Below are positions 2,710 to 64,000 of a DNA stretch of 64,000 nt, one piece after another; within the stretch, counting starts at the first letter, position 1, and every line of letters begins with the position of its first letter. The notes under the pieces were generated by a model. It was not told the origin of the DNA, did not search any database, and saw only the letters and a program-made list of their open reading frames with translations. Origin of the DNA: Octopus sinensis (Eukaryota); assembly GCF_006345805.1 (NCBI RefSeq), contig NC_042997.1, positions 183,210,001 to 183,274,000 of the forward strand. Reading direction: 5' to 3'. Both the position numbers and the translations under genes were made by a program.

Positions 2710-2744
2710 GAGGGTTCAGAGGTTTGATACAAAGAAACTCGAAC

Positions 2745-2846
2745 ATGGAACTCGTTGTCGGCGATCTCGAAGCGATACGTCGGACTAGGATCCTAAATGA
2801 ACAGTATTCAAGTGTTGCTCCACAAGATAAACCATTAAATACTCAG
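2745..2846 (+). CDS. WDR88: WDR88 coding exon 1 ([34 protein letters not shown])
   Basis: Strong Kozak context aacATGg, 34 open codons and a phase-0 donor CAG|gtcaga that fits the phase-0 start of exon 2. Lies in a CpG-rich tract just after ETS and X-box motifs. Confidence 0.72.
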
Positions 2847-15479: not shown

Positions 15480-15514
<35 letters not shown>

Positions 15515-18500: not shown

Positions 18501-21500
18501 ATGCCATTGATTTGTTTTCTTGGTTATAAAACAATCTTTAATGTTTCAAAGAGCTGAATATTACGCGTGAATTTTCAGAAGGCTGGCAGCAAAGGCTTAA
18601 AAAAGTGATATGGTGTTAAAATACTAAAAATCCATTCTGAAGAAACATTTGCTGATTATCATCTATATAATTGCTGTGGAAGGATTCTGACCACCCCCAT
18701 GTGACTAAAAGTGGAGTGGGTCATTTCTATTAAATAGACAACTATCAGGTTGTCAGCAGTTTGTGTGGTAAAATAGGCCATTACAAGTCACATTGTAAGA
18801 CAGAATTTGAAAAACGATTCAACAGAAAAAATCATGTAAACGGATTATTGGTAACAAAAATATGAATGAGCCTCGAAGAAAATTTGTCTATGTAAAAATT
18901 AATAACACAAACAAAATTACAATTTGATGCAGGCAGCAACACCTCAATAATTAACACAGATACATGGAAAAAAATCAGGAGACCTAAATTAAATGAAACT
19001 TTGAAAATTGCACGTGGTGTTTCAGGGAAAAAATTATATTTTAAGGGTGAATTGATAAGTAACATTACATTTTGTGAAAAAACTTTAAAGGCTAAAGTTT
19101 TTGTGTTAAATAATACAACAAACTTGTTTGATACTGACTGGATGAAATTGTTTAATTTATGGGACCTCCCCATAAATCTTTTCTGTAAAAATGTAAATGA
19201 TTTTTCCTCTAGTACAAATAAGTCACCAGACGAATTTAAAAAAAAAAAATTTATATTTTTCCTGAAGTTCTTTCCGGTAAATTAGGTGTGTACCAAAATG
19301 AAGGCACAGTTCCAAATACAAGAAAACACCATACTGACATTTAAACAAAAACAAACTACTGTTTGCGGCATGAGAACAGATAAACTTAGAGTTAGAGAGA
19401 CTAGAAAGAATTGGAGTTATCCTAAAAGTAGAATACAGTCAATGGTCAGCACCAACTCTGTACATTAAGAAGAGAAAAAAAACAGAGTCTGTGCTGATTT
19501 TTCCACTAGTTTAAACAAATGTCTTAAAACATGCCACTATCTGCCCCTACTCTGGAGGATATTTTTGTGAAATTAAATGGTAGCAAGATATTTTCTAAAA
19601 TGGATCTCTCTGATGTTTACCTACAAATTAGAGTAGATGATGAATGCTCTAAATACCTAACAATTAACACACATAAAGGACTGTATAAATACAACAGGTT
19701 ACCACCAGCAATTTTTCAAAAAGTTATGAATGCAATGTTAGCAGACTGTAAATTTGCAATTCCATATCTGGATGATATATTCATTATAAGCGAATCCAGA
19801 GATCAACATGTAGAGTGTGTAAAATATGTATTTGAAAAAATTAGGGATTACGACTTACCTTTGAGTGAAGAAAAGTGTGAATTTTTATTACTAGGACAAA
19901 TCATGGACATCAATCAGACCTGTTGAGGGCAGATGCAATTAAAAATATGTCTCCTCTGACTAATATACCAACCATACAAGCATTTTTAGGACTGACAAAT
20001 TATTACCAAAATTATATTCCAAATATGCATAAGGTGAGGATTTCACTGAGTAATCTGCTGAAAAAAGATATAAAATGGAATTGGTCAGAAAACTATCAAA
20101 AGTCATTTGATGAAATAAAAAAAGATATCAATATCTCATTTGTCATTAGCACACTTCAATCCTGCTGTGGAGATTGTTGAAGCATCAGATACTTCTGAGT
20201 ATGGTATAGGAGCAATAATACTACATAAATATAAAGATGGTAACATGAAGGTGGTGGTTCATGCCTGACATTCTCTGACATCAGCTGAGAAAAGTTATAG
20301 TCAAATTGAAAAAGAAGCTCTAGCGATAATTTTTGCTGTGGAAAAATTTCACAGATCTTTGCATGGTAGGAGTTTTCATCTACAGATTGATCACTGTCCA
20401 TTATTATTGATATTTGGGTTATAAAAAAGAATTCCTATGCATACTGTTAATAGGTTACAATGCTGAGGTACATCATCATCATCATCATCATCATTTAACG
20501 TCCGCTTTCCATGCTAGCATGGGTTGGACGGTTCAACTGGGGTCTGGGGAGCCTGAAGGCTGCACCAGGCCAGTCAGATCTGGCAGTGTTTCTACAGCTG
20601 GATGCCCTTCCTAACGCCAACCACTCCGAGAGTGTAGTGGGTGATTTTATGTGCCACCGACACAGGTGCCAGACGAGGCTGGCGAACGGCCACGCTCGGA
20701 TGGTGTTTTTATGTGCCACCGACACAGGTGCCAGACGAGGCTGGCAAACGGCCACGCTCGGATGGTGTTTTTATGTGCCACCGACACAGGTGCCAGACGA
20801 GGCTGGCGAACGGCCACGCTCAGATGGTGTTTTTATGTGCCACCGACACAGGTGCCAGACAAGGCTAGCAGACGACCACGCTCGGATGGTGTTTTTTATG
20901 TGCCACCGACACAGGAGCCAGATGAGGCTGGCGATCGGCCACGATCGGATGGTGATTGTTATGTGCCCACAGCATGGAGGCCAGTCGGTGCGGCACTGGC
21001 TACGACCACGTTCAGATGGTTTTCTCGTGTGCCACCGGCACTGGTACCACAAAGATACAAATTCCATTGATGTTCATCTATTTTGATTTTGTTTGATTTT
21101 TTGATTTGATTTGATTTGATTTTCACTTGCCTCAACAGGTCGTCACAAGTGTCACAAGAAGGAAGGTATGCACAGGTGGACTGACTACGTCCCAGGTAGG
21201 GGCCACGGGTTATGGCCTGACTAGTCTTGCCGGGTCTTCTCACGCACAGCATACTTCCATAGGTCTCGGTCTCTAGTCATTTCCTTGGTGAGACCTAAAG
21301 TTCGAAGGTCGTGCCTCACCACTTCGTCCCAGGTTTTCCTGGGTCTACCTCTTCCACAGGTTCCCTCAACTGCTAGGGTGTAGCACTTTTGCACACAACT
21401 ATCTTCAGCCATTCTCATCTTATGACCATACCAGCGCAGCCGTCTCTCTTGCACACCACAACTGACGCTTCTTAGGTTCAACTTTTCTCTCAAGGTACTT

Positions 21501-24500
21501 ACACTCTGACGATTATGAACACTGACATTACACATCCATCGGAGCATACTGGCTTCATTTCTTGCGAGCTTACGCATATCCTCAGCAGTCATGGCCCATG
21601 TTTCACTACCATGTAGCATGGCTGTACGTACACATGCATCATACAGTCTGCCTTTTACTCTGAGCGAGAGGCCTTTTGTCACCAGCAGGGGTAAGAGCTC
21701 TCTAAACTTTGCCCAGGCTATTCTTACTCTAGCAGTTACACTTTCAGCACACCCACCCCCGCTACTGACTTGGTCTCCTAGGTAGCGGAAGCTATCAACT
21801 ACTTCTAGTTTGTCTCCCTGGAACGTGGTAGAGGTTGGTCTCTGCACGTTTCCAGTGTTTATTTCTCCTGAGCATCTGCCACATATGAAAACTATCTTCC
21901 CAGTTAGCCTACCTTTGACATTGCTGCACCTCTTATGTGTCCATAGCTTACACTTGGTGCACCTTATAGAGTTTCTACCTACACCTTTTTTACAGATCGA
22001 GCAGGGCCATCTACCTGAAGTCGTTTGTGGTTGGTCCACCTTCCTACTTATTAGGACTTTGGTTTTGGCTAGGTTGATTCTAAGGCCCTTCGATTCTAAT
22101 CCTTGTTTCCACACCTGAAACTTCTCCAGTTCTGATAGTGACTCAGCAATTAGAGCAAGGCCATCAGCATAGAGGAGCTCCCAGGGGCATCCTGTCTTGA
22201 ATTCTTCCGTTATTGCCTGGAGGACTATGATAAATAGGAGGGGGCTGAGGACTGAACCTTGGTGGACCCCAACCTCTACCCGGAATTCTTCACTGTACTC
22301 GTTGCCTACCCTCACCTTACTAGCAGCATCTCTGTACATGGCTCGCACAGCTCTCACTAACCATTCATCTATCCCTAGTTTCCTCATTGACCACCAGATA
22401 AGGGATTGGGGGACCCTGTCAAAGGCTTTCTCCAAGTCAACAAAAGCCAGGTACAAGGGCTTACCTTTGGCTAGGTATTTCTCCTGCAGCTGTCTTACCA
22501 GGAATATAGCATCAGTAGTACTTTTCCCTGGCACAAACCCAAACTGCATATCATCTAAGCTAACTCTCTCTCTAATTAATTGGGCTATAACTCTCTCCAT
22601 AACCTTCATTACCTGATCCAACAACTTGATGCCCCTGTAGTTATTTGTATCTAGGGCGTCACCTTTACCTTTGTAGCAGTTGACTATTATGCTGCTACAC
22701 CAGTCATTGGGTATGACTCCTTCGTGTATCACCTGGTTAACTATACGGGTGACTATGCTATAGCCGACACTACCAGATATTTTGAGCATCTCTGCAGTAA
22801 TTCCTGATGGGCCTGGGGCTTTCTCTGTCTTCATGCTTCTAATTGCCTTAGCTACCACGGAACTATCAACTCGGATAGCTGGTCCCTCTGTTGGGTCAGC
22901 AGACTCTCTTTATCCCATTCATTTTCCTCATTCAGCAACCTTTCATAGTGGCGTCTCCAAGCCTCTCTCTTTGCATCCTCATTTAGCGCAAGTGAACCGT
23001 CATCCTTGCGAACACATTTCTCTCCTACCACATCACGATTCTCTCTCACACACTGTCTTGCAACACAAAATACCTCAAGTCTTTCATCCTCATGGCGCAG
23101 GACATTGGCAAATTTTCTCTTATCTGCTTCCCCTCTGACTAGATAGACCTGTCTCCTAGCTTCCCTTCTGGCAGTCTGATACACTTCCCTGCTACCCCCG
23201 TTCTTCCAAGCCTGTTTCTTTTGTCTAATAGCCCAGTCAACAATATTGTTCCACCACCACGTTATTTTGGGTCTTAAAGGGACTTTGCACCAGCCAAAGA
23301 TCTGGTCAGTGGCTTTCAGCAGGTTGTCCCTCAGAAGCATCCAGTTGTCTTCTACCCCATGCATAGCCATACCCCCTTCCATTTCGTCAAAGGCTTCAAG
23401 TAACATGTCTCTAAATCTCTGTCCATTCGCAGGGTCTTTAAGCTTCCAGACCCTTCTCCATGTTGGTCGTCTTCTAGTCGCCCTCTTATTCCTGATCCTA
23501 AAGTCACTAACTACCGGTCTATGTTGTGGGGTGCATTCTTCGCCTGGGAAGGTTTTGGCATTTATAAGCAGCCATCTTTCCCTTTTTCTGGCAAGGATGT
23601 AGTCGATTTGGCTAGTATGCCGGCCCGATCGGTAGGTGACCAGGTGGCTTGCTGGTTTCCTGAAGTTAGTGTTGCAGACCATAAGACTATTCGCATCGCA
23701 GAACTCCAGCAGCCTGGTTCCCTCCTCGTTGCGGGAACCATAACCGTAGCCTCCATGTACGCCATGGAAGCCCCCAGCATGTCGTCCAACATGCCCATTG
23801 AAATCACCAGCCACAAAGAGAAGGTCCCTGTCGTTCGTCAATGAGGTGGTCTGCAGTAGGGTGTCATAGAAACTGTCTTTCTGTCCATCGGGTAGCCCTG
23901 GCTGAGGGGCATAGGCCAATATAATAGTTGCTAATCTATTATGAAGCACTATTCTAATCTTAAGTATTCTGTCACTTACTCTGATTACCTCAATTACTCT
24001 ATCTACCCATTTCTCAGCAATAAGTATACCCACGCCACCAACCCCGTCAGTGTTCCCTGCCCAGAAAATCTTGTACCTGTGTTCCTTGCCTGTGAGGAAC
24101 CTAGCAGATCCTCCTCTCCACCTTATTTCTTGCATGCAACATACATCAACACGTCTCCGTTCAAGCATCTCGACTATCTCGCCAGACCTACGATATCATT
24201 AAACCATGATTTCAAGATGGAGTATACACTATCCAAGAAACAAGGGCATGTGGATTGTCTATCAAGACTGATTTCAAAAAATGTGGAACCATTTGCAGAT
24301 ATCATGATTGCTGTTTTGTGAGTGGAAAATAAAACTGAAAATGTTTTGTGTAACATCATTCATGAACTGCTAGTTACTTTACAAGACATAAAATTGAAAT
24401 CAGAAAATGATAAATTTATTATAAAAATGAAAGAAATACTGAAGGCTAAAAGAGATAAAAATATGTGCAACACAAATGTGAACCATTTCTCATTGTGTGA

Positions 24501-27500
24501 CAATGTGTTGATGTATGCACGAAGAGTCATAGTGCCAGCCACACTACAAAAGCAATTATCAAAGGAATTTCATTTTGGTCACCCAGGGATTTTGAGAATG
24601 AAATCATTAATGAGAAGTTACGTATATTGGCCAACAATGGACCATGACATTAGAGAATCTTTGAAATCATGCAGAGGATGTGTCTTAGTTGCAAAATCAC
24701 TAAATGGCAACCATGGCCAAAAACAGATGTTCCACGGGCCAGACTGCATGTTGTTTATGCAGGTCCACTCAAGGGATCATATGACCTTCTTGTGGTGGGC
24801 ATTTTTTCAAAGTGGCCAGAAGTACATAAATGTAAAAAGCTGACATCTGTGGTTACAATAATAAGCTTTTTACACAAATTGTTTGTCCGGTATGGTATTC
24901 CAGGTACCATTGTGTCAGATAATGGAACTCAATTTACCTCAGTTGAGTTCGGAAAACTTTGCAAAATGTTCGTCGTCATCAAACATATGACCACTCTGCC
25001 CTATCATCCTAGATCAAATGGACAAGTGGAGCATTTTGTTGACACTTTCAAGAGAGTGTTGAAAAAGATGAACAATAAAGTGATGGACAATTTTGCACTC
25101 CAACAATTTCTAAGAGTGTACTGAGTAACACCTAATCTGAGTACATTGTTGGGAATGTCACCTATAGAATTGATGTTTGCTAGAAAGGTCAGATCTGTCT
25201 TTGATAAGTGAAAATAAAAAAAGCAAACAACAAAAATACTTCAAAATTCTTCAAGTTAGGTGACAAAAATTTTTTTGAAAACCTATAGACATGATAAAGA
25301 AAGCTGGGAGGACAGTGTAATTATTAAACAAATTGGAAGAATGATATTCCTAGTAAAAGGGGAAAATGTCTAACAAGACATTAACCAGCTTAAGACAAGG
25401 TTCATGGTAAAGACAGTCACAAAAACAAAGGGGAGGTGTGGAAGGATACTCCCCCCCCCAAGTGACTAAAGGTGGCCTGGATCATTGTCATAAACTAAAG
25501 AACTGTGAGTAATTAGCAGTTCGTGTTGGTAGCAGTTCACTGTGAGCCTTTGATATAAAGTGTTGAGTCTCATGTAATAACAGTGCATCATATATATACT
25601 TTCTTCCCCCCACTGCTTCATTATATCCAAGACAAGGATATAAAAATAATAATTCTGCTTGTTTGTTCATTCCCACTTTGTACCTTTGTTAGAGAGAGTG
25701 AGATAGCAGATAGCCAATTTCACTAACCATACTGTCATAAGGTTAGTTGAAATGAGAGGTAAAGAGAAAGAGAAATGTTAATGACATGAAAAGGGGAATT
25801 ACATGGTTAAAAAAGTGTGTTGAAGTGAGAGAAAGAGAGAGAGAGTGCTTAGCAAAGGGAAATTTTAAAATCGTATAATATATTGTTGCAACTGGAAGTG
25901 AAATAACAGCAAAATAGCTGTGGCTGTTATTTTTTAATTTGCATTTCTTAATTTGCAATGAAAATGAAACTAATCATGTTTATAAAAACATTGTGTATAT
26001 TCTCTGTATTGTTTTATGTACATTAATTGTATATAATGTAAAGTAATGATAAAATATTGCATAATAAGGAATGTGCAATTATATATTGATTTTGTTGTTT
26101 CAATAGAATTAAATACTAATGAATGATATGTGCATTAAGTATCTTCAACTTGATGATAATGAAGTTAATATTCATGTACTCTCTTTTCCAAAACATAAGA
26201 ATAAGCTATAACTTTATATGTAGTTTTTACTACAGAAATATAATGTTTGATTAAGGTTACTGTATCAGATCTAGCTGGAGGTGTTATTTTATATGTGTCC
26301 TAAAATCTAAAACAAATTCTGCATTTCAAATCACTGCTAGTCTAAAGAAAGATTGCTATAATTCTTTGCAGAAAGAAATACAATTTCTCTTGACGTTTAC
26401 AGATTTTCACAAAAAAACTTCAACATGTCTAAGGTTCACACAAGAGGATGATAAAATAGTTTCTACATCATTTGATGGTACTACATCAATTTTTGACTTG
26501 AGAACAAACAGAGCCATAATTACTTTGACGTAAGTACAACATTTCAAAAGTAAAATCTAAAATAAATTGTTTTGATAGTAAATTTACCACAAACAACATA
26601 CTCAGTTCTATTGTGTCTGGGGAGAGTAATTTTCTTTTTGTGCCTTATGTAACACACTCACTGGTAAAATTTCCATGTTTTTCTTATTTTTATTGTCCTA
26701 AAATTTTTGTTGCGTCTTGCAACCTTATGACTCTCCCCAGACACAATAGAATATGCTTCAACACACGAACTCATATAAAGAATCTTGCAAACCAAATCCA
26801 AAAACATTAAAAAAATAACATACTCAGTTCTTCCTCTGAAATGCTTATACATGTTTGAGAAGCCTACTTCCTGTGAACTTCTCCCAAGCATAGAGACAGC
26901 CATGGATAGTAATTTAAACAACATACTAACTGCACCAATTTGTCTTAACCAACTCTGCTGAAAGAAACTGATTCTTTTTCAATTGACCCTCCTAATTTCT
27001 AAGTTTCTAAAAACAACTTATATTTCTGAGGGTTAAGCCACTGAATGTCTAATCCTATGAAATACCTGAAGAAATTCAAGTAATTCTTCATTTCATTATG
27101 ACTCAGTTTTATTTTTTACTAGCAGTGTTGCTCGGGTTTGTTTTTTTTTTCAATCCTTTAGAATTGGAATTTTTGAAAAGTAAAAATTTTGCATTATGTA
27201 GCTTGTTATTCTCTTTAAGTGAACATTTTTCTAGTTGAAATACACCGAAAAATGGCAATACAGCAGTCAAAAAATTGTAAAAAAAATAGGGATTTTCATA
27301 GAAAAAAAGCACCTTTTTGATGTAAATAATTTTTGGTCTTAACATGATCTGATTTGAATTTTTTCTTCAACAGAATGAAGAGCAAGCCTTCTTCTATCAT
27401 GCTCTCAATTTTGGTCAACTTGCGCTGCAGGGTCTCGGAGGAGATAGTGTTAGTTGAAGCCTACCAAACCTGCCACACACAGACAACTTCAGCTTTATAT

Positions 27501-27956
27501 ATATAGATTTCATCTCTTTTTGACAGGGGACACAAGAATATTGTTTCTTGCTGTGCACTGACTTTAAATGACCACTTCCTGGTCACTGGTGGATGGGACA
27601 AAATTTTAAATATATGGGATATTGCAATAGGAAAATACAGGTAACTATTTTCAAAACATCTTGATTTTAGTTTTCATATTCTTTTATTCTTTCTTTTTTT
27701 TTTTTTACTTGCTTCAGCCATTAGACTGTAGCCATGCTGAAGGGTTTTAGTTTAACGAATTGACCCCAGGACTTATTTTTAAAGCCTAGTACTTATTCTG
27801 TTGGTCTCCTTTGCTGAACTGCTAAGTTATGAAGACATAAACACACTAACACTGATTAACAAGTGGTGATGGTGGGGGAGAAAGCACAAACACAAAGGCA
27901 CACATACATATATATATATATAGAGAGAGATGATGATGATATACATACATATACAT

Positions 27957-28012
<56 letters not shown>

Positions 28013-31000
28013 TCAAAATAAGCAACAAGGATATCCAAGGTAGTGTAGTACAATCGTTTCATGCTACTTCATTTTATTAAACGCTGTAAGTATTACATCA
28101 GTTTTAAAATGTCGAGCAATCTTCAGCCACATATAGAATTTTTTAATTAAATGGGCAATGTACATTTTTATACTTATATATATATATATATATATATATG
28201 TTCTTGTTTCTGTCTACCAAATCTAATCACAAGATTTAGGTTGGCCCCAAGGCTATAGTAGAAGACACTTGCCCAAGGTGCCATGCAGTGGGACTGAACG
28301 TAGAACCCTGTGGTTGGGAAGCAAGCTTCTTACCACAGAGCTACGCCTGTGCCTGTATAATGTCAAGTATTTGCATGTAAGGTGGAAACAATGTCTCTGT
28401 ATCTTACTTTACTTACACAGACATTGGTTAAAAACAATCTCTTTAATCCTGTCATTACTGCAAACTCACTATTAATTAGTATCATAAAATCATCATCAGC
28501 ATTGTTGTTTTAGCATTCATTTTACCATGCTTGCATTGGTCATACGGAATTTGTTGAAACAGATTTTCTACAGCCAGATGCCCTTCCTGTTGCCAACTCT
28601 CACCTGTTTCCAAGCAAGATGACATTTACTCATGGACAGACATGTTTTCCATGTGAGATTGGAAATAATTGACTCTGCATGTATGGTGGTGACATTTGTT
28701 TACAGCTATCACTTGAAGTCAAGGCAATGAGAGAGGGTAATGCACACACACACACACATATACACACACACTCACACACAAACACATACTTTTATGGATC
28801 TATGCAGGATTGCACCTAAGGACTTACGCTCATGGATCTGTGCAGGATTGCACCTAAGGACTCATGCTCTTGTTTCTATAACTTCGGAAAGTTGAACTAT
28901 GAACTTTTATGCTTCTTTTCTCTTTTTCTTTCCATCTCCTTATTCTTTTACTCCCTTCGTCTATGTCGTCATCTCATTAATATATACCATTCTTGTTTTC
29001 CTTATTTTTTCCCTATTTGTCTCTGATGACAGAATATCCCATACACGGGGATATCCCAGAAACAGCCATAAGGCTTTGAATTTTTTCCAATAATAATATT
29101 GTATGCAACTTGAGATATTTCCCTTGCTTTAATGTTTGTTGTCCTCTTTAACAATTATTTATCCACTGCATCAGAAGTTTTCAATGGCTCCATAACTACT
29201 GCCTTGGCTATAACCTTGGAGCCCTAGTAATCCGTTACAGTACTTACCAAGTGTACCTAATCGTTTAGATCACTTCTGAACTAAACCCCCATACTTTGTA
29301 TATGTGCATGTATATACCACTTATTAATCTGAGTGGAGGCAATGCGAGCAGTAACTAAAGGAACGTTACTAAAATCCACAGAAAGATCAAACACATACAT
29401 ATATTCATATATTCACTTATATCCACAGAACAGATATAAAGTCCGAAGTTTAAAAATATAATAATATATAAATAAATAAACATCATATAAAATATATAAA
29501 TATATAAGAATCAGTGTTACATACAAAACACATTGAATTTACGCTTAAAATCATGAAACATTTGGTAAATTATTTGTTAAATAAAAAATTTGGGATAATA
29601 AAACATACAATGACATATTAAAATGATGTATTAAAATTCCAGAGAAAAATACAGAAAAATTAAATATACAAAATTACAAAATTGTTCATCTATGAGATGT
29701 GCCAATTAATATGAAACATTTCATATATTCATGTGCGTGTATATATGAATATACATGAGATCATATGGCCTAGTGGCTACGATGTTGTACTCACAATTGT
29801 GAGATCTTGGTTTTAATTACTGGACTGGATGATGCATTGTACTGTGTCCTTGAGCAACACACTTCTTCTCTCATTGGTCTGCTGTCACCTCCACACCTGA
29901 TGTATGGCACATCATGCACCTTTTCAGGCAATGTCTATTTGATAGAGGGAGTTAGCTAATGTCTGGCACATACATTTGATCACTATAAACAAATCATTTG
30001 TGCAGATCGTTCAGCTTTTGCCAAACACTCATGTCATCTTTGACGGAAGAATCCATCATATACAAATACATTCACACACACACGTCAAGCTAAGTAAAGC
30101 TCTGGCTGCCTCTACATTCAAGTATGTCGTACGTCCCTCTCTCAGCTGAGAGATTCTTCCCTTGAAGGCTTACAGGTGCTGGTGCCACATAAAAGTGCCC
30201 ATGCTGGTGCCACATAAAAGCACCTGTGCTGATGACATGTAAAAGTGCCAATGCCGGTGTCACATAAAAGTGTCCGTGCCAATGTTACTTAAAGGTACCT
30301 GTGTTGGTGCCATGTAAAAGCATCCTAGCTGGTGCCATGTAAAAGCAGCCAGTACACTGTATGAAGTAGTTGGTATTAGGAAGGGTGTCCAGCTGTAGAA
30401 TCCATGCCAAAATAGGCAACTGAAACATGGGCAGCTCCCAAGCTCCTGTCAAACTGTACAACTTATGCCAGCATGGAAAGCAGACATTAAATGATAATGA
30501 TGATGATAGTGCTGCTGCTGCTGATGATGACATCAAGCTTCTTTTAGTTTCCATGAACCAAATCCATTCAGTCGAATGACAAAGGAACAGGAATCACACA
30601 ATCAACTTCATTAGCTCACAGCTGTTTCAGTTATAAGAAGCAGTGCATTCACAGCTGAGTGCTTATGGATCATCTTATAGCTTCAATGGAGCCTTTTAAA
30701 CATGCATGCATGCTTACATACATACATACATACATACATACACACACACATACATACATACATACATAATACATATATACATACTTACATACATACATAT
30801 ATACGTATGTACATACATACATACATACATACATACACACACTCATGCTAACATGTGTGTTAACCAATGAAGGTGATTATGTAATTCTTGTTGTCTTGTC
30901 ATTTGATTAATTCGTATTACACTCTGTACTCAACTAATGCTTTATTCTGAAGCCTATATATATTGAGTTTTGGCTGCAGGTTATTAGTATTGCTATGCCT

Positions 31001-34000
31001 AAGCAAAATCTTAAAATATCTATATGTATATCTATATATGTGAATATATGTGTGTGTATGAGCGAGTGTGTGTATATTTGTATCTCCTTATCTTGACATC
31101 ATGTGGTAGTTGTAAATAAGTGTCACTATCATACAAGCTGTGTCACTATCATACAAGCTGTGTCATTCATTACCAATATTCTGTGATAATGTCTGGTGAT
31201 GGGAAAATATTACTTGCTTGGAAACAGGTGAATGTTGGCAACAAGAAGGGCATCCAGCTGTAGAAAACCTGACTCAATAACACTGTCTGTCCCATGGAAG
31301 CATAGAAAAACGGACATTAAAATGATGCCACCTCCTCTACTGCTGCAGCCACAGCTGCCACTACCGCTGCAACCAACAACAATGATTATGACACTACTGC
31401 TGCCAACACTGCTGACAACTGCAAAGAGCCAGAACAGGTACTGCAACACATGTTGTATGATTCTCTAACAGTTCTACAACTCTACCATCCTTAACTGCTA
31501 CTTTATTTATCAGCACCCACTTTCCGTCAAACAGATGAAAGGTACAGGTAACCTCAGTGAGATTAGATCTCAGCATATGTAGAGCTGAAACAAAGTACCA
31601 TAAGGCATTCTCAATCATTCAAGACACCTGACACTTGATACTGCTTCTGCTGCTGATGATGATGATGAGGATAATGATGATGACAACGATGATGATAGGA
31701 TGGGATTTTAGTGAAGTGATGATGATGATGGTGTTGTGTTGGTGTTGTTGCTTAACCTCAGGTCAGTCTTAATTGAGCAGACCAATAAATGATTAAAGCA
31801 TTCCTGCTATGACCAGCTTGTAGGGCCGATGTAACTTATCCTTGTACAAGTTGTTGTGGTGTGATTTAAAGGAGATTTGGTTGCTGTTTCTAGAAAATCG
31901 AATGATCAGGTAGAGGCTTTCTTGGTGGCTCAGTAATAGTAGTGGGAATGCTCACATGGGAAATTCTAACATTAACTATTCTTGTAAATATCAGTGATAT
32001 TGCTAACTAATAAGCGGCTTCCACTTGTACTGACACATAAACCTCTGCTTCTACTGTTCATACTTCTAATGCTACTAACTCACCCATTGTTATTATTATT
32101 GCTGCAGTGAATAATATCAACACCACCATAGCCATCTATCTCTTTTATTGCTACCACCATTGTTGTTACTATTGTGCTGTGCTGTGGCTAACACTACATC
32201 TGTTGCTGCTACTACTTTTACTTCTAATGACAGTGCTATTGGTATAAACACCACTTTCTTTATTATGGAAAATTCATCAGAAAGCTGGATAAAATGCTTT
32301 TGTTCTGCCTCTTTACATTGAATTCAAAACCAGCTGAGGTCAACTTTGTATTTTATTCTGCCAGGGTTGATAAAATAATGTATGTATCTAGACTGAGGTA
32401 TTATAAGTCTCCAAGGCAGGTGATTTAATCAGCTAACACCCTATCCTTAAATTTCTGGTCTTGTGTTTATATTAGAAACAATTATTATTATTATTGTTTA
32501 AGGTGGCAAGTTGACAGAATCATTGGCATGCTGGAAAAATGCTTAGCAGCACTTTTTCTGGCTTTATGTTCTAGGTTCAAATTCCGCTGAGGTCAACTTT
32601 GCCTTTCATCCTTTCGGGGTCAATAAAATAAGTACCAGTTGAGCACTGGGGTTGATGTAATCGACTTACCCTCTTCCGAAATTTCTGGCCTCGTTCCAAA
32701 ATTTGAAATCATTATTACCAAGTAGATCAGTACGTTAAAATAACCTTTATAGGTAAAATTATCCACATAATTATAATTGGGGTTCAGCTAATTGCTTCAC
32801 CACATGCCAAATTTGGAAGTAGGAGTTGAAATTCCTTTTCTGCTACTGTAAGAATAGTAGCAGAAAAGGAATTTTGACTCCTATTTCTGGGTTTGGTGTG
32901 TGGTGGGGCATTGGCTGAACCCTAATTATAATTATGTATATATATATATATCCACACATACACACACACACACACACACACATCCATAAATGTGCCGGTG
33001 ACATGTAAAAGCACCCACTACACTCTCAGAATGGTTGGCGTTAGGAAGGGCATCCAGCTGTAGAAACTCTGCCAGATCAGATTGGAGTCTGGTGCAGCCA
33101 TCTGGTTTGCCAGACCTCAGTCAAATCGTCCAACCCATGCTAGCATGGAAAGCGGATGTTAGACGATGATTATTATTATTATTATTATTATTATTATTTT
33201 TTAAGGTGGTTAGCTGACAGAATCATTGACATGCCAGAGAAATCCTTAGCAGCGTTTTTTCTGGCTTTACAGTCTCAGTTCAAATGCCACCAAGGTCAAC
33301 TTCACTTTCAGGAACAATAAAATGAATACCAGTCAAACACTGGTGTCAATATAACTGATTTCCCCCTCCCCTCAAAATTGCTGACCATGTGCCAAAAATT
33401 AAAAAGAATAATTATTATTGTTGTGCTGTGGTGGAGTGATGGAGTGGTAGAAATGGTAAGAACGGAGTTCAATGCTTCACAGTATTTAACATTCAGATTA
33501 AATTGTATTATAATTTTTATTTATTGACATTGTTTTGAATTAATCAGGTATCATCTTGTACCTTCAAGATTTTGATGATGTGATTGTATATTTTTTGAAT
33601 GACGTTGTACCATAGGTGCAAGAGACCCAAACTGGTTGGTTTGAACATAAAACAGGTTAGAATATTTAGGCCAGATTAGGCTGGATTAAATACTAAAAGG
33701 TTAATTCATCCTTCATGACCTTGTGTCTGTAAGAAGTCATTATTTAGTGTATCCCTTTAGGTTCTGAACTCTCTGTGTAGTGAAACTTTATCTTTATACT
33801 TTCAAAGGCAATAAAATAAATACCAGTTTATTGGTATTTTGATTTCAGTACTATTGGAATCAAATAAAATAATTGCCTGATTTGATTCCAGTACTATTCA
33901 TATAAACACCACTTTTTTATTGTAGAAAATTCATTAGAAAACCAGATAAAATGCTTCTGTTCTGGCTCTTTACATTGAATTCAAAACCAGCTGAGGTTGT

Positions 34001-37000
34001 CTTTGTATTTTATCTGTCAGGATTGATAAAATAATATACCTATCAAGAATGAGATATTATATGTTTATAAGACTGGTGATTTAATCAATAAAATAAATAC
34101 CAGTTTATTGGTATTTTGATTCCAGTACTGGAATCAAATCAGTCAACTATACACCAATTCCAGATAGATTTAATGGCTTTGTGTTATTATAAGAGATTAT
34201 TATTACAAAGGCGGTGAGCTGGCAGAATTGTTAGCGTGCCGGGCGAAATGGTTAGCGGTATTTTGTCTGCCATTGCGTTCTGAGTTCAAATTCTGCTGGG
34301 GTCAACTTTGCCTTTCATCCTTCCGGGGTCAATAAATTAAGTACCAGTTATGCACGGGGGTCGATGTAATCGACTTAATCCCTTTGTCTGTCCTTGTTCG
34401 TCCCCTCTATGTTTAGCCCCTTGTGGGCAATAAAGAAATAAGAATCATTAGCACACTAGGCAAAATGCTGAGCAGCATTTCGTCCATCTGCATGTTCTGT
34501 GTTCAAATTCTGCCAAGGTTGACTTTGCCTGTCTTCCTTTTGGGGTCAATAAAATAATTACCAGTTGAACACTGGGATCGATGTAATTGACTTATCCCCT
34601 CTCCTGAAATTGTTGGCCTTGTGCCCGCAATTTGAAACTATTATTATTTATTTCTTTATTGCCCAGTGCGTAACTGGTACTTAATTTATCGACCCCGAAA
34701 GGATGAAAGGCAAAGTCGACCTCAGTGGAATTTGAACTCAGAACGTAATGGCAGACGAAATACCGCTAAGCATTTCACCTGGTGTGCTAATGTTTCTGCC
34801 AGTTCACCACCTTATTACTATTATTACAAGTATTATTAAGATGGCAAGCTGACAGAATCTTTAGCATGCTGTACCACCAAGGTTGTATTTGCTTTTCATC
34901 TATTTGAGACTGATGAAATAAGTACCAGTTGAGCACTGGAGTAAATGTAATTAATTGACTAATCTCCTCTCCCAAAATTTCAGGTCTTATGCCAAAATCT
35001 CAAACAATTATTATTAAGGTGGGGAGCTGACAGAATCTTTAGCTTTCTGGACAAAATGCTTAAGACATATGTCTAGCTTTATGATTTGAGTTCAGATTCT
35101 GTTGAAGTTGACTTTGCCTGTTATCTTTCTGGGTCAGTAGAATAAGTATTAGTTGAGCACTGGGGTTGATGTAATTGACTAGCTTCCTCCCACAAAATTT
35201 CAAGCTTTGTGCTGATAGTAAAAAGGATTATTATAATTACTATTCTGTAAAACTGTTCAGTTAACAGAATAGTCACATGACAAACTAATTATCTTATAAT
35301 ATTTAGTTTGCACCTCTACATTCAAGCTCAAATCCTGTCCTCCTCCTAAGTCAGTCAACACTAGTCATGTAATATTGCTAATGTGTTTTGTTCTTTTGAC
35401 CATTTCTCAATGCAACAACTGCAATTAACCATATCCTCCCAATTCAGATACCTAGGCAACATGACTGTTAATGATTGAACATTGGATAAAAGGTTTCTAG
35501 AACACCTGAGGCAGGGCTCTGTAGCCTTTGGAAAGCTTCATATGAAGGTCTTTCTAAATAATCGTTTCAGCCTCCATACCAAGTTTCTTGTCTTTTTTGG
35601 GTAGTCTATGTTTCTACTTCTCTGTATGGGTGCAAGCTAGGATCACAAACTGCTGGTACATTAAGGCCCTCAGAATCTGTGACATCTAGTGTCTCCAGAA
35701 AATCATTTCAGTCTCCTGATGAGAAAGCATTATACACAGAAATTCTTCATTAAATCAACATCAGTAGCATGAAATCCATATTATATAGGTATCAACTGAG
35801 GCAGATTGATTGAATATGTCTGATTCATGTCTCCCTTGTAGGATCATCTATAGCCAGTTGTACCATGGCCATTGCCTGACTGGACAACAAAGAAAAGTTG
35901 TTCAAAGAACAGCTGAAGACCACTTTGAAGAGCAGTATAACCAACCCTTCAAGATTGAAAGATAACACGTCCAGCTTTTCACATTGGTGTTCTCATAGTT
36001 GGGGAAGGATTCAAGATATGGAGGTGAAACACACTCAGTGGCATACCATGGATTTTGGCTGCTGTGTTGTTTCTCAATTGATCACTCCACTTTAACTACA
36101 AACAGTACATGTATATAAAGTGGCTGTCCTGTATGGTCTATACAAACTGCACACCCAACACTGTGCTGTTGAACACACTGTGCACTAACAGAGGAAGTGA
36201 GAAAAGAGGCATGCATGAAGATTAATACCTAGCTTCTCCTATTAAGCATCCACATTCCTTGTCTGCAACCAAAGCTGCATAATGAAGATCAGGGTATATA
36301 GTCATCAAAGGATCTTCAATTTTAAAAAAATGCTTCGGCAGTACATATTCTAAAATTGGAATGATACAGAGAAGATTAGCATGGCCCCTGTGCAAGGATG
36401 ACACGCAAATTCATGAAGCATTCCATATTTTTTTAAAGGTGCAGGAGTGGCTGTGTGGTAAGTAGCTTGCTTACCAACCACATGGTTCCGGGTTCATTCC
36501 CACTGCGTGGCACCTTGAGCAGGTGTCTTCTACTATAGCCTTGGGCCGACCAAAGCCTTGTGAGTGGATTTGGTAGACGGAATCTGAAAGAAGCCTGTCG
36601 TATATATATATATATGTGTGCGTGTGTTTGCGTGTCTGTGTTTGTCCCCCCAACATCGTTTGACAACCGATGCTGGTGTGTTTACGTCCCCATAACTTAG
36701 CGCTTCGGCAAAAGCAACCGATAGATTAAGTACTAGGCTTACAAAGAATAAGTCCTGGGGTCGATTTGCTCGACTAAAGGTGGTGCTCCAGCATGGCCGC
36801 AGTCAAATGACTGAAACAAGTAAAAGAGTAAAAAGTGTATCACTGAATTTGATGAACAACCATAAGCATTGATAAAATAGCTACTTGTAAATAGATAGAA
36901 GTGGTTCAACGCATTTCCTCTTGTTCACTTTTCTGTAAAAGGTTACCTTATGTCTAGACAATAGAAATTGCTTTCATGAAAACCACTGCTGCCTCTGCTG

Positions 37001-42188: not shown

Positions 42189-45100
42189 GCTCATGGAATA
42201 TAAACATTTGTTTGCATGTGCGAGTGTGTATGCATGCATATGCATGGGTGCTTGAATGTGTATATTTACTGTGATGTAGTCAAGTGACCAATAGTACCAT
42301 CGCCAACTCCCTTTACCCATCCCAGATTAATATTTATAACAACCACTGTCTCTCCTGAAAGACACCAACTATCTACAAATGTCTACCTCTTCTTTTTTTT
42401 CCCTCTCTTTTTCTTCATTCCTAACAATACATAATTTTCATTCTCAAATATTTGACCTCATTCTTTGCTTTTCTTACTTCTTGATTGTTTTATTTCTTCA
42501 AGCATTTGCTTTTATGTTCTGTTTTTCTGGCTTCTCCACTCATTTTCAACTCATATCTGCAGGGAGTTAACTTGAGAATCCCAAATGACAATGTAACATT
42601 CATGTAATTAAGGCAGTCTTGACCTAATGAATAGTTTAGCTGATTACCCCTCATTCAGTAATTATTACGTCAGAGGATCAGCTAGCTAAGCAACATATAT
42701 GGCCTGGATTTTATCCATTCTTCTCCTTCAATTTGGATTTTTATTTACATTTATAGGCGTAGGAGTGGCTGTGTGGTAAGTAGCTTGCTTATGAACCACA
42801 TGGTTCCAGGTTCAGTCCCACTGTGTGGCACCTTGGGCAAGTGTCTTCTACTATAGCCTCAGGCTGAACAAAGTCTTGTGAGTGGATTTGGTAGACAGAA
42901 ACTAAAAATTAGCCCGTCGTATATATGTGTATGTATATCTATGTGTGTGTCTGTGTTTGACCCCCATAACCACTTGACAACTGGTGTTGGTGTGTTTATG
43001 GCCTGATAACTTAGTGGTTTGGCAAAAAAAGACCGATAGAATAAGTTCTGGGGTTAATACTCTTGAGTCTGTAAATTCGTGTGTGTGTGTGTAAATATAC
43101 AATAATCATCAAATCATTTTCTGTAAAACAACCAGTTTGTCTTAATACTGTTTACATCATGTCTATTACTTTGTGTTGTGCCATCAATTTCATCCTCATC
43201 CATTGATAGAACATCTTCCAGAAGGATTTATTTCTTCTATAAACGAATTTAATTCCTTTTCTTAGAACAGCAGGACCAATTTCATTACAGGGACATGAAG
43301 GCTCCATTAGCTGTTGTGTGTTTGGTCTAGAGGGTAAGTTGATTTTTACTTTGAATTTCAGTCAAAACAAGTTTTAGTTTGTTTTAATTTGGCTGTCCAC
43401 CTGGACATTTCTATGATTTCCTACAAGCACACCATCCATCACAGTCACCCACATATGTTCTTAATTCGTCAACATTTGCCATTCCACTGTTTTGAAGCAA
43501 GTTGCCAACATAGGTTGGATGCTTTCTGCTGCTTGTTCTTCTTTCAACTGACCAATTGATGCACAGGTTCTTGTTACTTCTTTACTACCCACAAGGTGCT
43601 ACAGACAGAAGGGACAAACAAGGTCAGACAAATGGATTAAGTCGATTATATCGACCCCCAGTACGAAACCAGTACTTATTTAATCAACCCCGAAAGGATG
43701 AAAGGCAAAGTCGATCCTGGCGGAATTTGAACTCAGAATGTAGCAGCAGACGAGATACCTATTTCTTTACTACCCACAAGGGGCTAAACACAGAGAGGAC
43801 AAACAAGGACAGACAAACGGATTAAGTCGATTACATCAACCCCAGTGTGAAACTGGTACTTATTTAATCGACCCCAAAAGGATGAAAGGCAAAGTCAACC
43901 CCGAAGGAATTTGAACTCAGAATGTAGCAGCAGATGAAATACCTATTTTTTTACTACCCACAAGGGGCTAAACACAGAGAGGACAAACAAGGACAGACAA
44001 ACGGATTAAATCGATTATATTGACCCCATTGCAAAACTGGTACTTATTTAATTGACCCCGAAAGGATAAAAGGCAAAGTCGACCCCGGCAGAATTTGAAC
44101 TCGGAACGTAGCGGCAGACAAAATACCGCTAAGCATTTTGCCCGGCGTGCTAACGTTTCTGCCAGCTCGCCACCTTTAGCACAGGTTCTTCTGGGTGCCT
44201 GACACAATGATCAGCAATTCTCTTTCTTCTCTACTGAATCTTCTCGGTTACTTTGGGCAGACCTTGATGAAGCTGGTTGTTAGTTAAATGAGCTCTCCAT
44301 GTAATATTCAGAGCCATTCTTAACATTCTTGTGTAGCAGCCATCTAGTTGTCAAAACAAAGTTGATGTCAGACAATGAATCAACCAACTATCAAATGTGG
44401 TTGATTTGTTGTCAAGACATACTTCTTGATAAGCCAAACCTTTTATCATTGTACTATAACTGAACTGATTACACTCTCTACTATTTTACTCTTTTACTTG
44501 TTTCAGTCATTTGACTGCGGCCATGCTGGAGCACCACCTTTAATCGAGCAAATCAACCCCAGGATTTATTCTATCGGATCTCTTTTGCTGAACTGCAAAG
44601 TTACGGGGACGTAAACACACCAGCATCGGTTGTCAAGCGATGTTGGGGGACAAACACAGACACACAAACATACAGACACATACACATATATATATATACA
44701 TATATACGACGGGCTTCTTTCAGTTTCCGTTTACCAAATCCACTGACAAGGCTTTGGTCAGCCTGAGGCTATAGTAGAAGACATTTACCCAAGGTGTCAC
44801 GCAGTGGGACTGAACCCGGAACCATGTGGTTTGTAAGCAAGTTACTTACCACACAGCCACTCCTGCTCCTAGTATACTGTGTAACAAAATTTTAATTTTT
44901 TTGTCTTTAGTCAGTATTTCACATTTGCTTCTATCTAGAAATCAAAGGAAAGTATTACTATTCCCTTCGAACTTTGCTTTTGTGGCCTGGACATCAATGT
45001 TTTGAAACTGACCTATTTTCCATTATACTTCAGACAGATTCAATGCTGAGTTGCTGAAGCAGAAATATTATTATAGCAAATATTCTGCTCAGTACTACAG

Positions 45101-58784: not shown

Positions 58785-58984
58785 GTAATGCATTTCTTCC
58801 AAAGCTAATTCCAAAGAATTACACCTAATGCAAAATGTCTTTTGTTGGTTTTTTTCCACCCCCTACCCGAAACTTAAATGAAAATATTACCTTCAAAACA
58901 ATGGCTTTAACAACTATTAGAGAATATATATTCTTCCCAGTGGTTTTCTAATATGGATGTGCAATGCTAATTTGTTCAAAATGC

Positions 58985-59580
58985 AGAGCACAAGTCACTT
59001 GCAAAAGTTGTTGACTATCTATCTGCGGCTTTATATAGCTATGGTAAGACCTCACCTAGAATTTGCATCACCGGTCTGGAACCCCTATCTTGCCCAGGAT
59101 ATCAATCGTCTGGAAGCCGTTCAGCGACATGCAACCAAGAGAATACCCTCCATCAGGCATTTGCCATATTCTGAACGCCTTACTTCCCTGGGCATGGACA
59201 CATTGAAACTCCGACGTCCAGCAGCTGACTTGGCAGACACCCATAAAATTATCAACCATCGTACAAACAATAACTCTGAGCACCTTTTCAAACTCCACCC
59301 ATCTAACACCCGTGGACATATTTACAAAGTCAGAAAACAGCACAGCTCCCATGACTTTCGGAAACATTTTTTCACACTAAGAGTTGCTGAAGCATGGAAC
59401 AGACTGCCGGCATCAGTTGTTAGTTGTCGGAGCACTGCATCCTTCAAAACTTTCATGCTTCCTGAGATTCGCCAACACTACACCTGATTTTCTCCCCTCC
59501 ATACACATGCAAACTGTTCTTAAGTTGTGATGCACCTGAGCACTGTATACAATAATTTCATTATATTATATATATTATAT
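58985..59580 (+). mobile_element. 5'-truncated CR1-like LINE 200 nt downstream of the WDR88 stop
   Basis: YIAMVRPHLEFASPVWNPYLAQDINRLEAVQRHATKRIP...[14 protein letters not shown]; AT-rich tail. Confidence 0.9.
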
Positions 59581-63900: not shown

Positions 63901-64000
63901 TATGTGAATGAGACTGTCACATGTATTCTTATTTCTGTGTGCATGTAAGTGTTCATGTGTGTGTGTGTGTAACATGCACTTATATTTAAGTACATGTATG

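Follow-up and report, generated by a model that had tools for sequence, protein, structure and literature searches.

The hairpin described here lies on CM016859.1 of Octopus sinensis and was analysed within a 64-kb window, by which we mean the whole stretch of DNA under analysis. It is located inside a WDR88-like gene, within a 15.6-kb intron (intron 6). As the upstream exon is on the + strand, + is also the sense strand of the hairpin. Two SINE copies of different families flank the hairpin, and a microsatellite follows it directly on the 3' side (Table 1). The microsatellite is possibly the tail of a + oriented retro-copy, or else unrelated to the hairpin. A search for WDR88 orthologues returned none outside the cluster formed by O. 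vulgaris and O. sinensis, and no named Octopus entry was among the matches listed for relatives of the LINE reverse transcriptase in the window.

Table 1. Features of the hairpin locus; positions are those of the window.
Feature	Position	Strand	Remarks
Upstream exon, WDR88-like gene	27528..27641	+	residues 212-249
SINE copy, family A, flanking	32497..32720		without one-strand hypermutation relative to family consensus
Alternative candidate target-site duplication TATCCACA, 8 bp	32760..32767 + 32949..32956		right copy at start of (CA)n microsatellite
Left arm	32766..32847	+	5 G + 8 T of the 13 G:T positions; unpaired T 32792
Candidate target-site duplication TAATTATAATT, 11 bp	32768..32778 + 32923..32933		self-complementary, (AATTAT)n-like, also helix base; present in O. 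vulgaris too
G+C-richer core (GGGGTTCAGC...GCTGAACCC)	32779..32922	+	contains the G:T positions; may be the inserted element proper
Loop GTAAGAAT	32848..32855	+	two extra RNAfold pairs leave AAGA; same in O. vulgaris
Right arm	32856..32936	+	8 G + 5 T of the 13 G:T positions; one A missing after 32909, present in O. vulgaris
Microsatellite (TA)n-(CA)n, adjoining the hairpin on its 3' side	32937..32982	+	possible tail of a + oriented retro-copy, or unrelated
SINE copy, family B, flanking	32990..33165		without one-strand hypermutation relative to family consensus
Downstream exon, WDR88-like gene	43264..43350	+	residues about 249-277

Geometry and folding of the hairpin

The hairpin is a 171-nt palindrome with a left arm of 82 nt, a right arm of 81 nt, and a loop of 8 nt. 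Alignment of the left arm with the reverse complement of the right arm gave 68 Watson-Crick pairs, 13 mismatches, and a single unpaired T. On the + strand, each of the 13 mismatches sets a G against a T, that is, G:U as RNA; A.C mismatches and transversions are absent. Five of them place G in the left arm and T in the right arm (32779, 32806, 32815, 32819, and 32828), and the remaining eight place T in the left arm and G in the right arm (32789, 32796, 32797, 32805, 32812, 32813, 32814, and 32827). The mismatches are clustered as dinucleotides, six being found in three TG:TG steps and four in two TT:GG steps. The G:T pairs are 20-69 bp away from the loop, and no mismatch interrupts the apical 19 bp or the basal 13 bp.

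RNAfold folds the + strand RNA into a single helix of -127.0 kcal/mol, whereas the - strand RNA has 13 interruptions and reaches -90.2 kcal/mol. Alignment and folding of both strands agree with what an earlier note on this DNA had described, namely two arms with an 8-nt loop and one bulge, 13 differences that are all G-U on the + strand, and a nearly unbroken 81-bp helix on that strand only. Folded as DNA, the + strand is also the more stable (-64.9 vs -55.3 kcal/mol), and the RNA fold within a 301-nt context has a z-score of -13.5. The sense strand of the WDR88-like pre-mRNA contains the long, near-perfect intramolecular duplex (81 bp) that is expected of an ADAR substrate. Judged from this folding, the hairpin would very likely be a promiscuous ADAR substrate in the pre-mRNA, as a by-product.

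Inverted Alu pairs are intronic ADAR substrates in primates. Intronic hairpins in octopus provide a further comparison (PMC9699675). The hairpin resembles these substrates in forming a long intramolecular sense-strand duplex in a pre-mRNA intron, where promiscuous A-to-I editing is expected. It is, however, tight, with its 8-nt loop, and G:U-only, whereas those substrates usually consist of two separate copies with long loops and all kinds of mismatches, as same-intron SINE pairs do.

Comparison with Octopus vulgaris and with known RNA classes

All 13 mismatches are present in the O. vulgaris orthologue and are therefore older than the O. sinensis/O. vulgaris split. An assembly artefact was ruled out, since the 13 sites are common to two independent assemblies of two species. 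Between the two species, the hairpin has five substitutions in 171 nt (2.9%), and the flanks diverge by 2.87% (32000-32765) and 2.75% (32937-33700), the overall flank range being 2.8-3.7%. The hairpin is thus not conserved above its flanks as a miRNA would be (2.9% vs 2.75-2.87%). Across the 82 pairs, the changes after the split comprise three switches between Watson-Crick and G:U pairs, two broken pairs, and one indel. Covariation had been put forward earlier as a test of the helix; the number of compensatory double changes between O. sinensis and O. vulgaris is zero (82 pairs in two species, a comparison of low power), and selection for pairing is not indicated. The helix is broken in both species. 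Specifically, TG>CA at 32894-95 gives a tandem A.C/C.A in O. vulgaris, and one deletion creates a bulge in O. sinensis. O. vulgaris retains CpG at 32785-86 and 32803-04, both of which are variable sites, and the TG/CA difference at 32894-95 implies an ancestral CpG. When the substitutions are polarised on ancestral CpGs, all three that fall to O. sinensis improve pairing. Both species have the same apical 19 bp and the same loop. On these five substitutions and one indel between two close species, the hairpin looks to be decaying like neutral DNA since the split. Slow accumulation at the disruptive rate seen after the split predicts about eight A.C or transversion mismatches beside the 13 G:U, and the hairpin carried at most one.

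Animal miRNA precursors have a stem of ~33-35 bp, single-stranded flanks, and an apical loop of ~10 nt or more. The octopus hairpin differs from this shape in that its stem is 81 bp long and helical down to the base, and its loop is 8 nt, or 4 nt after closure by RNAfold. A search of Rfam with permissive and gathering thresholds gave only sub-threshold generic miRNA-hairpin matches, of which the best is MIR7533 with 70.9 bits vs a gathering score of 230. A hammerhead or retrozyme-like rod RNA was rejected, as Rfam had no match for it. The apical arm sequences are not in 10 supplementary files of the O. vulgaris miRNA paper.

Drosophila hpRNA precursors of endo-siRNAs were reportedly described in 2008 by Okamura et al. 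and by Czech et al. Like them, the octopus hairpin is a long genome-encoded inverted repeat forming one long RNA helix, and the whole repeat is contained in the sense strand of the annotated gene, hence in one RNA. The Drosophila hpRNAs, in contrast, are longer, have identifiable target genes, and depend on a Dicer and an Argonaute dedicated to siRNAs. Molluscs are reported to be without these proteins (PMC12479628). That survey covered 32 molluscs including O. bimaculoides, in which neither siAgo nor siDicer nor a Dicer-pair signature was detected. According to this literature, the octopus would lack the combination of dedicated siRNA Dicer, Argonaute, and endo-siRNAs on which an hpRNA depends (PMC12479628).

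One-sidedness of the mismatches and its possible causes

The other inverted repeats of the two loci (O. sinensis and O. vulgaris, ~160 kb) have 252 G:U, 196 A.C, and 209 transversion mismatches, and the empirical chance that a mismatch is G:U on the + strand is 0.38-0.40. In the repeat at 4094/4244, no G:U, two A.C, and one transversion were counted, and in that at 10873/11062, no G:U, one A.C, and one transversion; the earlier statement that the repeats at 4101 and 10873 are free of the bias is hence confirmed. No second one-sided inverted repeat was found in the 160 kb of the two loci. In a simulation of neutral decay that used the rates of the locus and hypermutable CpGs, none of 13,876 hairpins with 10-16 mismatches was all-G:U on the + strand. 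CpG sites at the locus mutate ~12 times faster. Among SINE copies polarised on their consensus, the G:U-type fraction on the sense strand is only 0.40. Elsewhere in the gene there is a mild sense-strand excess, with 143 G:U-type vs 118 A.C-type changes and, at CpG, 51 C>T vs 33 G>A. As the flanking SINE copies are without one-strand hypermutation, the effect is confined to the hairpin. Regional kataegis-like hypermutation was ruled out by the balanced spectra of the flanking SINEs. Long-term transcription-associated asymmetry was ruled out as the sole cause, because the window is without G/C or A/T skew and the polarised asymmetry is only ~55:45.

The chance of 2^-13 given in the earlier note requires two corrections that roughly cancel each other: clustering leaves ~8-10 independent events, and the absence of transversions, which had not been counted, adds significance. 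Our most conservative hand estimate for the all-G:U pattern is p ~1e-3, this caution being due to the six of 13 mismatches in three TG:TG steps. The G:U-only pattern is not chance at this locus; yet an event of 1e-3 to 1e-4 could arise by chance if very many hairpins were scanned.

One explanation is in-place selection for an RNA helix, be it an unusual miRNA, a long-hairpin small-RNA precursor, a regulatory dsRNA, or a selected ADAR target, under which only pairing-keeping A>G and C>U changes are tolerated. For the sense strand it predicts exactly what is seen, 13 G:U with neither A.C nor transversions, and it accords with the fold asymmetry of -127 vs -90 kcal/mol, with the pairing kept in three of the five interspecies differences (and improved by all three O. 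sinensis substitutions if the CpGs are ancestral), and with the perfect apical 19 bp and loop, which are the same in both species. Such selection is, however, at odds with a divergence equal to that of the flanks, with the absence of compensatory double changes, and with the tandem A.C/C.A in O. vulgaris and the new bulge in O. sinensis, so the selected helix of the earlier note is not borne out as a present-day function. Since an 81-bp helix loses only a few percent of its stability through a single mismatch, it is implausible that every non-wobble change was purged. The slow route to 13 G:U would also need an age many times that of the split, and the deep conservation that it predicts is not seen over the testable interval. 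The hairpin is moreover not miRNA-like in shape, belongs to no Rfam family, is not in the octopus miRNA supplement, and sits in a phylum for which the dedicated endo-siRNA pathway is reported missing (PMC12479628); we hold selection for the helix to be distinctly unlikely. The same mismatches could have come about by chance through ordinary processes, if a CpG-rich palindrome decayed by methyl-CpG deamination, its CG:CG steps became TG:TG by luck, and the rest went the same way by chance with the help of a mild sense-strand excess of A>G/C>T.

This account by chance is unlikely, though it has several observations on its side. Six of the 13 mismatches are the three TG:TG steps, CpG is still present in O. 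vulgaris at 32785-86 and 32803-04 and implied as ancestral at 32894-95, CpG mutation at the locus has the ~12-fold rate given above, and the sense-strand excess elsewhere in the gene (143 vs 118; at CpG, 51 vs 33) has the required direction. Assuming six CG:CG steps, the outcome in O. sinensis would be TG 9 : CA 3, which is not a significant skew, and the hairpin was singled out for its oddness among the hairpins of a wider scan. Against it, the seven non-CpG mismatches are also all G:U and without transversion; their probability is ~0.34^7 = ~5e-4, or 0.0045 if each of the two TT:GG steps is counted once. CpGs so far decayed predict ~8 A.C or transversion mismatches where 0 are seen, the simulation that included CpG decay gave 0/13,876, and the 160 kb hold no comparable inverted repeat. 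We regard as very improbable a filter at the DNA level, in which a hairpin would be extruded from the non-template (+) strand in transcription, and distortion-sensing repair or arm-to-arm conversion would spare only the well-stacked G.T wobble, no function of the RNA being required. In this transcribed gene, the pattern is indeed specific to the non-template strand, and the + strand DNA hairpin is the more stable (-64.9 vs -55.3 kcal/mol). The filter is nevertheless purely speculative, and known mismatch recognition deals best with G.T. The disruptive changes fixed after the split argue that none operates, and nearby inverted repeats with longer loops are without such an effect.

Proposed origin and meaning of the hairpin

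The hairpin does not look like a working RNA gene, but like the scar of one-strand deamination or of an insertion derived from RNA. We assign a probability of roughly one half to the reading that a palindrome was inserted, had one-strand transitions from early on, by a burst or from birth, and is now decaying neutrally. According to this proposal, the palindrome, either a fold-back/MITE-like element or a small retro-copy, would have been inserted into intron 6 of the WDR88-like gene before the species split. Its arms differ by only one transition class on one strand, namely A>G and/or C>T on +. These changes would stem from a burst or from the making of the palindrome, not from slow accumulation under selection. 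As the changes are older than the split and the biased process is not visibly continuing, a burst or a palindrome born with them is favoured. The changes could have been made by ADAR hyper-editing of a duplex RNA that was then reverse-transcribed into the genome (13/13 as A>G), by cytosine deamination limited to the + DNA strand and partly at methylated CpG (13/13 as C>T), or by retro-copying of an RNA with G:U pairs already in its stem. The present-day activity would be passive only, that of a pre-mRNA duplex of ~80 bp and likely ADAR substrate.

Copies of the hairpin were searched for in several collections. Within the 64-kb window, blastn with a word size of 7 gave microsatellite matches only. 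The O. vulgaris and O. sinensis loci (~80 kb each, 160 kb) contain no other copy, no source copy, and no empty site. The search for copies and orthologues proposed in the earlier note thus brought to light the O. vulgaris orthologue and no further copy in the 160 kb. Exact and degenerate patterns had no match in JGI metagenome contigs and IMG/VR. No predicted protein carrying the translation of the hairpin (six frames joined as one query) was found at E<=10, and an exact look-up in public assemblies had none of the three small ORFs that overlap or adjoin the hairpin on record. Possible marks of retroposition or of a MITE are the inverted repeats together with two ambiguous candidate direct repeats and the 3' (TA)n(CA)n; the direct repeats and this tract are of low complexity or self-complementary. 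With neither a further copy nor a source copy nor an empty site in these collections, we can only infer the insertion and its mechanism, and likewise the burst and its enzyme.

The earlier note had suggested a hyper-edited fossil or a strand-specific C>T change. Both are viable and belong to the favoured burst family; the two are not separable, since the 13 sites fit either direction. Read as A>G, the changes affect 13 of all 56 adenosines, or 13 of 31 when only the central 49 bp are counted. The 5' neighbours of the changed A are U 8, A 4, G 1, and C 0, and those of the unchanged A are U 13, A 17, C 8, and G 5; the enrichment of U (p=0.054) would fit an ADAR reading, as ADAR prefers U or A to G on the 5' side. 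In the apical 19 bp, 0 of 13 adenosines are changed (P=0.004 under uniform editing), which is against the ADAR reading and must be accounted for by it. Read as C>T, six of the 13 changed C are in CpG context vs 0 of 25 unchanged C (p=6e-4), and this reading fits the CpG context and the CpGs of O. vulgaris at two variable sites. It also agrees better with the positions (P=0.05 vs 0.004 for A>G). Against this reading, its contexts are mixed, with CpG plus C-runs, and no cephalopod enzyme is known that would make one-strand C>T changes. Among molluscs, AID/APOBEC-like genes are reported only outside the cephalopods (PMC5889660).

Several known systems resemble the hairpin in part. In an inverted-repeat region of avian retroviruses, ADAR-type A-to-G changes converted nearly 50% of adenosines to guanosines (work of 1994, reviewed in PMC12925331). 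Shared with that case are an inverted-repeat duplex, one transition type, both arms of one strand, and a large share of adenosines. The octopus hairpin differs in that no retroviral or retroelement context and no unedited source was found, A>G and C>T can both be read, the apical 19 bp are untouched, and the host is a cephalopod. Carmi, Church & Levanon in 2011 reportedly found retroelement copies with APOBEC-type G>A/C>T hypermutation in vertebrate genomes, which likewise are strand-coordinated clusters of a single transition type in genomic DNA. Unlike for those copies, an AID/APOBEC-like enzyme is not documented for cephalopods (PMC5889660). In single-stranded DNA, base pairing would shield the stem. 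The contexts in octopus are also mixed (six CpG, the rest mostly C-runs), with no single APOBEC motif. Palindromic MITEs can give rise to miRNA hairpins, as human MADE1 does to miR-548. The octopus hairpin is similar to MADE1 in being almost all inverted arms with a small loop, in its intronic location and candidate short flanking direct repeats, and in giving a long hairpin when transcribed. MITE families, in contrast, have many copies, and one-sided mismatches are not known from them, whereas the octopus hairpin is single in 160 kb and its mismatches all go one way.

The two-species comparison cautions against taking 'all mismatches G:U' as proof of a functional RNA. If the hairpin is a chance outlier, it is an ordinary decaying intronic palindrome. 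If the changes are C>T, they would speak for strand-specific deamination of DNA in a group from which no enzyme of this kind has been described. It is a rather doubtful but conceivable reading that an RNA duplex hyper-edited by ADAR was copied into DNA and became fixed in the germline as this hairpin, with A-to-I editing written back into coleoid DNA and, more broadly, that coleoid introns might hold hairpins shaped by a process acting on the sense-strand RNA. Coleoid cephalopods carry out RNA editing on an exceptional scale. The hairpin touches on the question of whether this editing ever feeds back into the genome, and such a hairpin could document the feedback.

The hairpin and its host gene

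The window comes from Octopus sinensis chromosome CM016859.1 (assembly GCA_006345805.1) and is identical to L002, the O. sinensis locus of its host gene, with an offset of 7256. The gene is annotated as WD repeat-containing protein 88-like. Its + strand exons lie on either side of the hairpin, which makes + the sense (non-template) strand; the earlier note had assumed this orientation. One SINE copy neighbors the hairpin on each side, and the hairpin belongs to neither SINE family. Within the same intron, U6 spliceosomal RNA is matched over its full length (103.9 bits against a gathering score of 44), and this may be either a gene or a retro-pseudogene of U6.

Realignment of the left arm with the reverse complement of the right arm gave 81 positions, with T 32792 unpaired and an 8-nt loop. 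Sixty-eight positions are Watson-Crick pairs, and all 13 mismatches place G opposite T on the + strand (five G:T and eight T:G), just as the earlier note had described. The stem thus comprises 43 A:T, 25 G:C, and 13 G:T pairs. Folded as RNA, the + strand forms one unbroken helix of -127.0 kcal/mol, whereas the - strand is interrupted 13 times and reaches -90.2 kcal/mol. The z-score against shuffles is -13.5 for the hairpin in a 301-nt context. With DNA parameters the strand asymmetry is smaller (-64.9 versus -55.3 kcal/mol for + and -). A filter acting on the hairpin at the DNA level is a very improbable explanation of the pattern.

Features of the window and of L001, the O. vulgaris WDR88-like gene locus (window positions unless marked L001)
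Feature	Position	Strand	Remark
WDR88-like exons	2745, 11974, 15333, 17270, 26402, 27528, 43264, 48923, 52748, 55017, 58668	+	exon mapping
Hairpin-bearing intron	between exons 27528-27641 and 43264-43350	+	15.6 kb
Hairpin arms	32766-32847 / 32856-32936		
Hairpin orthologue	L001 43423-43594		O. vulgaris
U6 match	36330-36432	+	
Tight palindrome	4094-4202 / 4244-4352		109-nt arms, 97% complementary, 41-nt loop
Inverted SINE pair	34198-34359 / 34662-34823		1.3 kb downstream of hairpin
Orthologue of SINE pair	L001 44863-45095 / 45302-45535		O. vulgaris
Species difference	32786		A (O. sinensis) vs G (O. vulgaris)
Species difference	32798		C vs T
Species difference	32804		A vs G
Species difference	32894-95		TG vs CA
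Species difference	after 32909		extra A in O. vulgaris only
Candidate target-site duplication TAATTATAATT	directly flanks 32779-32922		11 bp; flanked core is G+C-richer
Candidate target-site duplication TATCCACA	32760-67 and 32949-56		8 bp
Segment missing in O. vulgaris	~20472-24190		~3.7 kb; orthologous point L001 ~29782-29790
Tandem-repeat block in segment	20499-21083		segment also holds a SINE
LINE reverse-transcriptase frame in segment	21221-22858	-	intact, 545 aa
LINE endonuclease frame in segment	22852-24168	-	intact, 438 aa
Gypsy-like pol frame	19531-19926 and 24322-25124	+	split by segment
Reading frames	14364-14819; 47736-48008	-	
Copies of 176-aa reading frame	1839-2057, 58957-59487, 60567-800		
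176-residue annotated gene	L001 70951-71481		O. vulgaris
Blocks without alignment to L001	9201-15483, 27989-30810, 45991-51520		kb-scale

Mismatches expected at this locus

Other inverted repeats of the two loci (arms at most 3 kb apart, hairpin left out) carry 252 G:U and 196 A.C mismatches as read on the + strand and 209 of transversion type. The probability that a mismatch is G:U(+) is therefore 0.38, and none of these repeats has a one-sided pattern. The two other tight palindromes of the window have G:U/A.C/transversion counts of 0/2/1 and 0/1/1, in agreement with the earlier statement that the repeats at 4101 and 10873 lack the bias. The palindrome starting at 4094, with two A.C(+) mismatches and one transversion, is biased in the reverse direction. 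Twenty-one SINE copies, polarised on their family consensus, provide a sense-strand spectrum of 52 A>G, 37 T>C, 40 C>T, and 48 G>A non-CpG transitions, 51 C>T and 33 G>A CpG transitions, and 97 transversions. Their G:U-type fraction is 0.40, and hypermutation relative to the consensus was not found in the copies flanking the hairpin.

We then simulated decay from three alternative perfect ancestors with locus-derived rates (per O. sinensis/O. vulgaris divergence, 0.81% for non-CpG transitions, 0.44% for transversions, and 9.6% for CpG transitions). None of 13,876 simulated hairpins carrying 10-16 mismatches was all G:U(+). The observed mismatches are clustered, with six in three TG:TG steps and four in two TT:GG steps. 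The earlier chance figure of 2^-13 therefore overcounts independent events, and it also ignores the absence of transversions; the most conservative hand estimate for this one hairpin is ~1e-3. At this locus the G:U-only pattern is genuine and out of the ordinary, and chance combined with CpG decay retains a small but appreciable probability as its explanation. The inverted SINE pair downstream of the hairpin has a mild G:U(+) excess (G:U/A.C/transversion counts of 13/5/7 in O. sinensis, with 16/6/5 for the O. vulgaris orthologue). This excess and the gene-wide 252 versus 196 are compatible with a weak sense-strand asymmetry.

Comparison with O. vulgaris

The search for relatives of the host protein returned none beyond the O. 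vulgaris/O. sinensis cluster. The alignment of L001 to the window spans 42 kb and shows 1.57% substitutions, a transition:transversion count of 458:209, and a symmetric spectrum. Divergence is very uneven along the gene, from 0.30% in 51520-64000 and 0.77% in 1-9201 up to 3.7% in 15483-20479. All 13 G:T positions are common to both species and hence older than their split. The hairpin differs by five substitutions in 171 nt (2.9%), and its flanks (32000-32765 and 32937-33700) by 2.87% and 2.75%. Seventy-seven pairs of the helix are invariant, three switch between Watson-Crick and G:U, and one has a gap; two pairs are broken in O. vulgaris (tandem A.C/C.A). The left arm has AATT at this place, so it is the O. 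vulgaris state of the indel that is paired, and the bulge probably arose when the O. sinensis lineage lost a base. Each lineage has fixed a helix-disrupting change after the split, at about the neutral rate.

With divergence at the neutral rate and helix breaks in both lineages, this two-species comparison does not support the functional RNA proposed earlier. A helix maintained by selection would be expected to diverge less than the flanking DNA and to lose disruptive changes, and neither is seen since the split; the comparison also contains no pair changed on both sides and thus no covariation. Moreover, a helix of 81 bp gains or loses only a few percent of its stability through a single mismatch, which makes it implausible that every A.C and transversion was purged while 13 wobbles were spared. 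The 81-bp stem with an 8-nt loop is unlike an animal miRNA precursor, Rfam returned only sub-threshold generic hairpin matches (best 70.9 bits, gathering score 230), and the apical sequences are absent from 10 supplementary files of the paper on O. vulgaris miRNAs. In 32 molluscs, O. bimaculoides among them, a survey found neither a dedicated siRNA Argonaute/Dicer nor an endo-siRNA signature (PMC12479628). Under one polarisation all three O. sinensis substitutions improve pairing, and two close species offer little power, so we keep selection in place as an improbable explanation.

Origin of the one-sided changes

The arm differences that predate the split comprise 13 of G:U type, or 15 with the CpGs of O. 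vulgaris taken as ancestral, and no more than one mismatch of another kind; the later changes look like a neutral mix. Had the post-split rate of disruptive changes applied throughout, a hairpin that gained its 13 wobbles singly would be expected to hold ~8 mismatches of A.C or transversion type. The simplest reconciliation is that the palindrome was still young when the species separated, that the one-type changes came as a burst or were present at its making, and that the hairpin would have drifted ever since. One transition type on one strand across an inverted repeat always yields G:U only on that strand, which is a signature of enzymatic hypermutation. The most likely account, to which we assign a probability of about one half, is a palindromic insertion with a frozen one-strand transition burst or an RNA-derived origin, now decaying neutrally as an intronic inverted repeat.

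Both A>G and C>T fit the pattern, as already proposed. The 5' neighbors of the putatively changed adenosines are U 8, A 4, G 1, and C 0, compared with U 13, A 17, C 8, and G 5 for unchanged A (U enrichment p=0.054), and this is the order of preference known for ADARs. Editing of duplex RNA followed by reverse transcription would have altered 13 of the 31 adenosines that the central 49 bp contain. This share is close to the 'nearly 50%' of adenosines changed in an inverted-repeat region of avian retroviruses (PMC12925331). A (TA)n(CA)n tract also lies 3' of the element on the + strand. A point against A>G is that none of the 13 apical (19 bp) and 12 basal (13 bp) adenosines is altered (P=0.004, permutation); the basal 13 bp may be a duplicated target outside the original duplex. 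One-strand C>T change would place 6 of 13 changed but 0 of 25 unchanged cytosines in CpG (p=6e-4). CpG mutates ~12 times faster at this locus. Two variable sites are still CpG in O. vulgaris, and a third CpG in the ancestor is implied by the TG/CA difference. The inferred ancestor would be CpG-rich with 46% G+C and so resemble the SINE consensus sequences found here, which are CpG-rich as well, and the changes track the cytosine distribution (P=0.05). The seven sites outside CpG speak against C>T, most of them falling within C-runs, and so does the shielding of paired cytosines in a DNA hairpin. We know of no single deaminase that matches this mix of contexts. AID/APOBEC-like genes are described in oysters and gastropods in a report that does not mention cephalopods (PMC5889660). 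Thirdly, the element may have been retro-copied from an RNA with G:U pairs already in its stem. Taken singly, each of these three routes is improbable, with ADAR editing and reverse transcription rated level with the other two or slightly above them.

No second copy of the hairpin, which the earlier note had suggested looking for, was found in the window or the two loci. Scanning metagenome and viral contigs for its sequence pattern gave no match, and the protein search found no predicted protein containing its translation. TAATTATAATT is self-complementary, which would account for the perfect helix base. Both direct repeats also occur in O. vulgaris and could be target-site duplications, neither persuasive alone. 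Elsewhere in the window, the minus-strand LINE within the segment missing in O. vulgaris looks young and is possibly active. Relatives of its reverse transcriptase (50-73% identity) come from marine metagenome contigs and cnidarian, bivalve, and amphioxus genomes, with none from Octopus among the named relatives in the matches listed. Judged by eye, the frames at 14364 and 47736 resemble mariner/Tc1 transposase remnants. As for the hairpin itself, it is predicted that it should passively feed ADAR in the present-day transcript.
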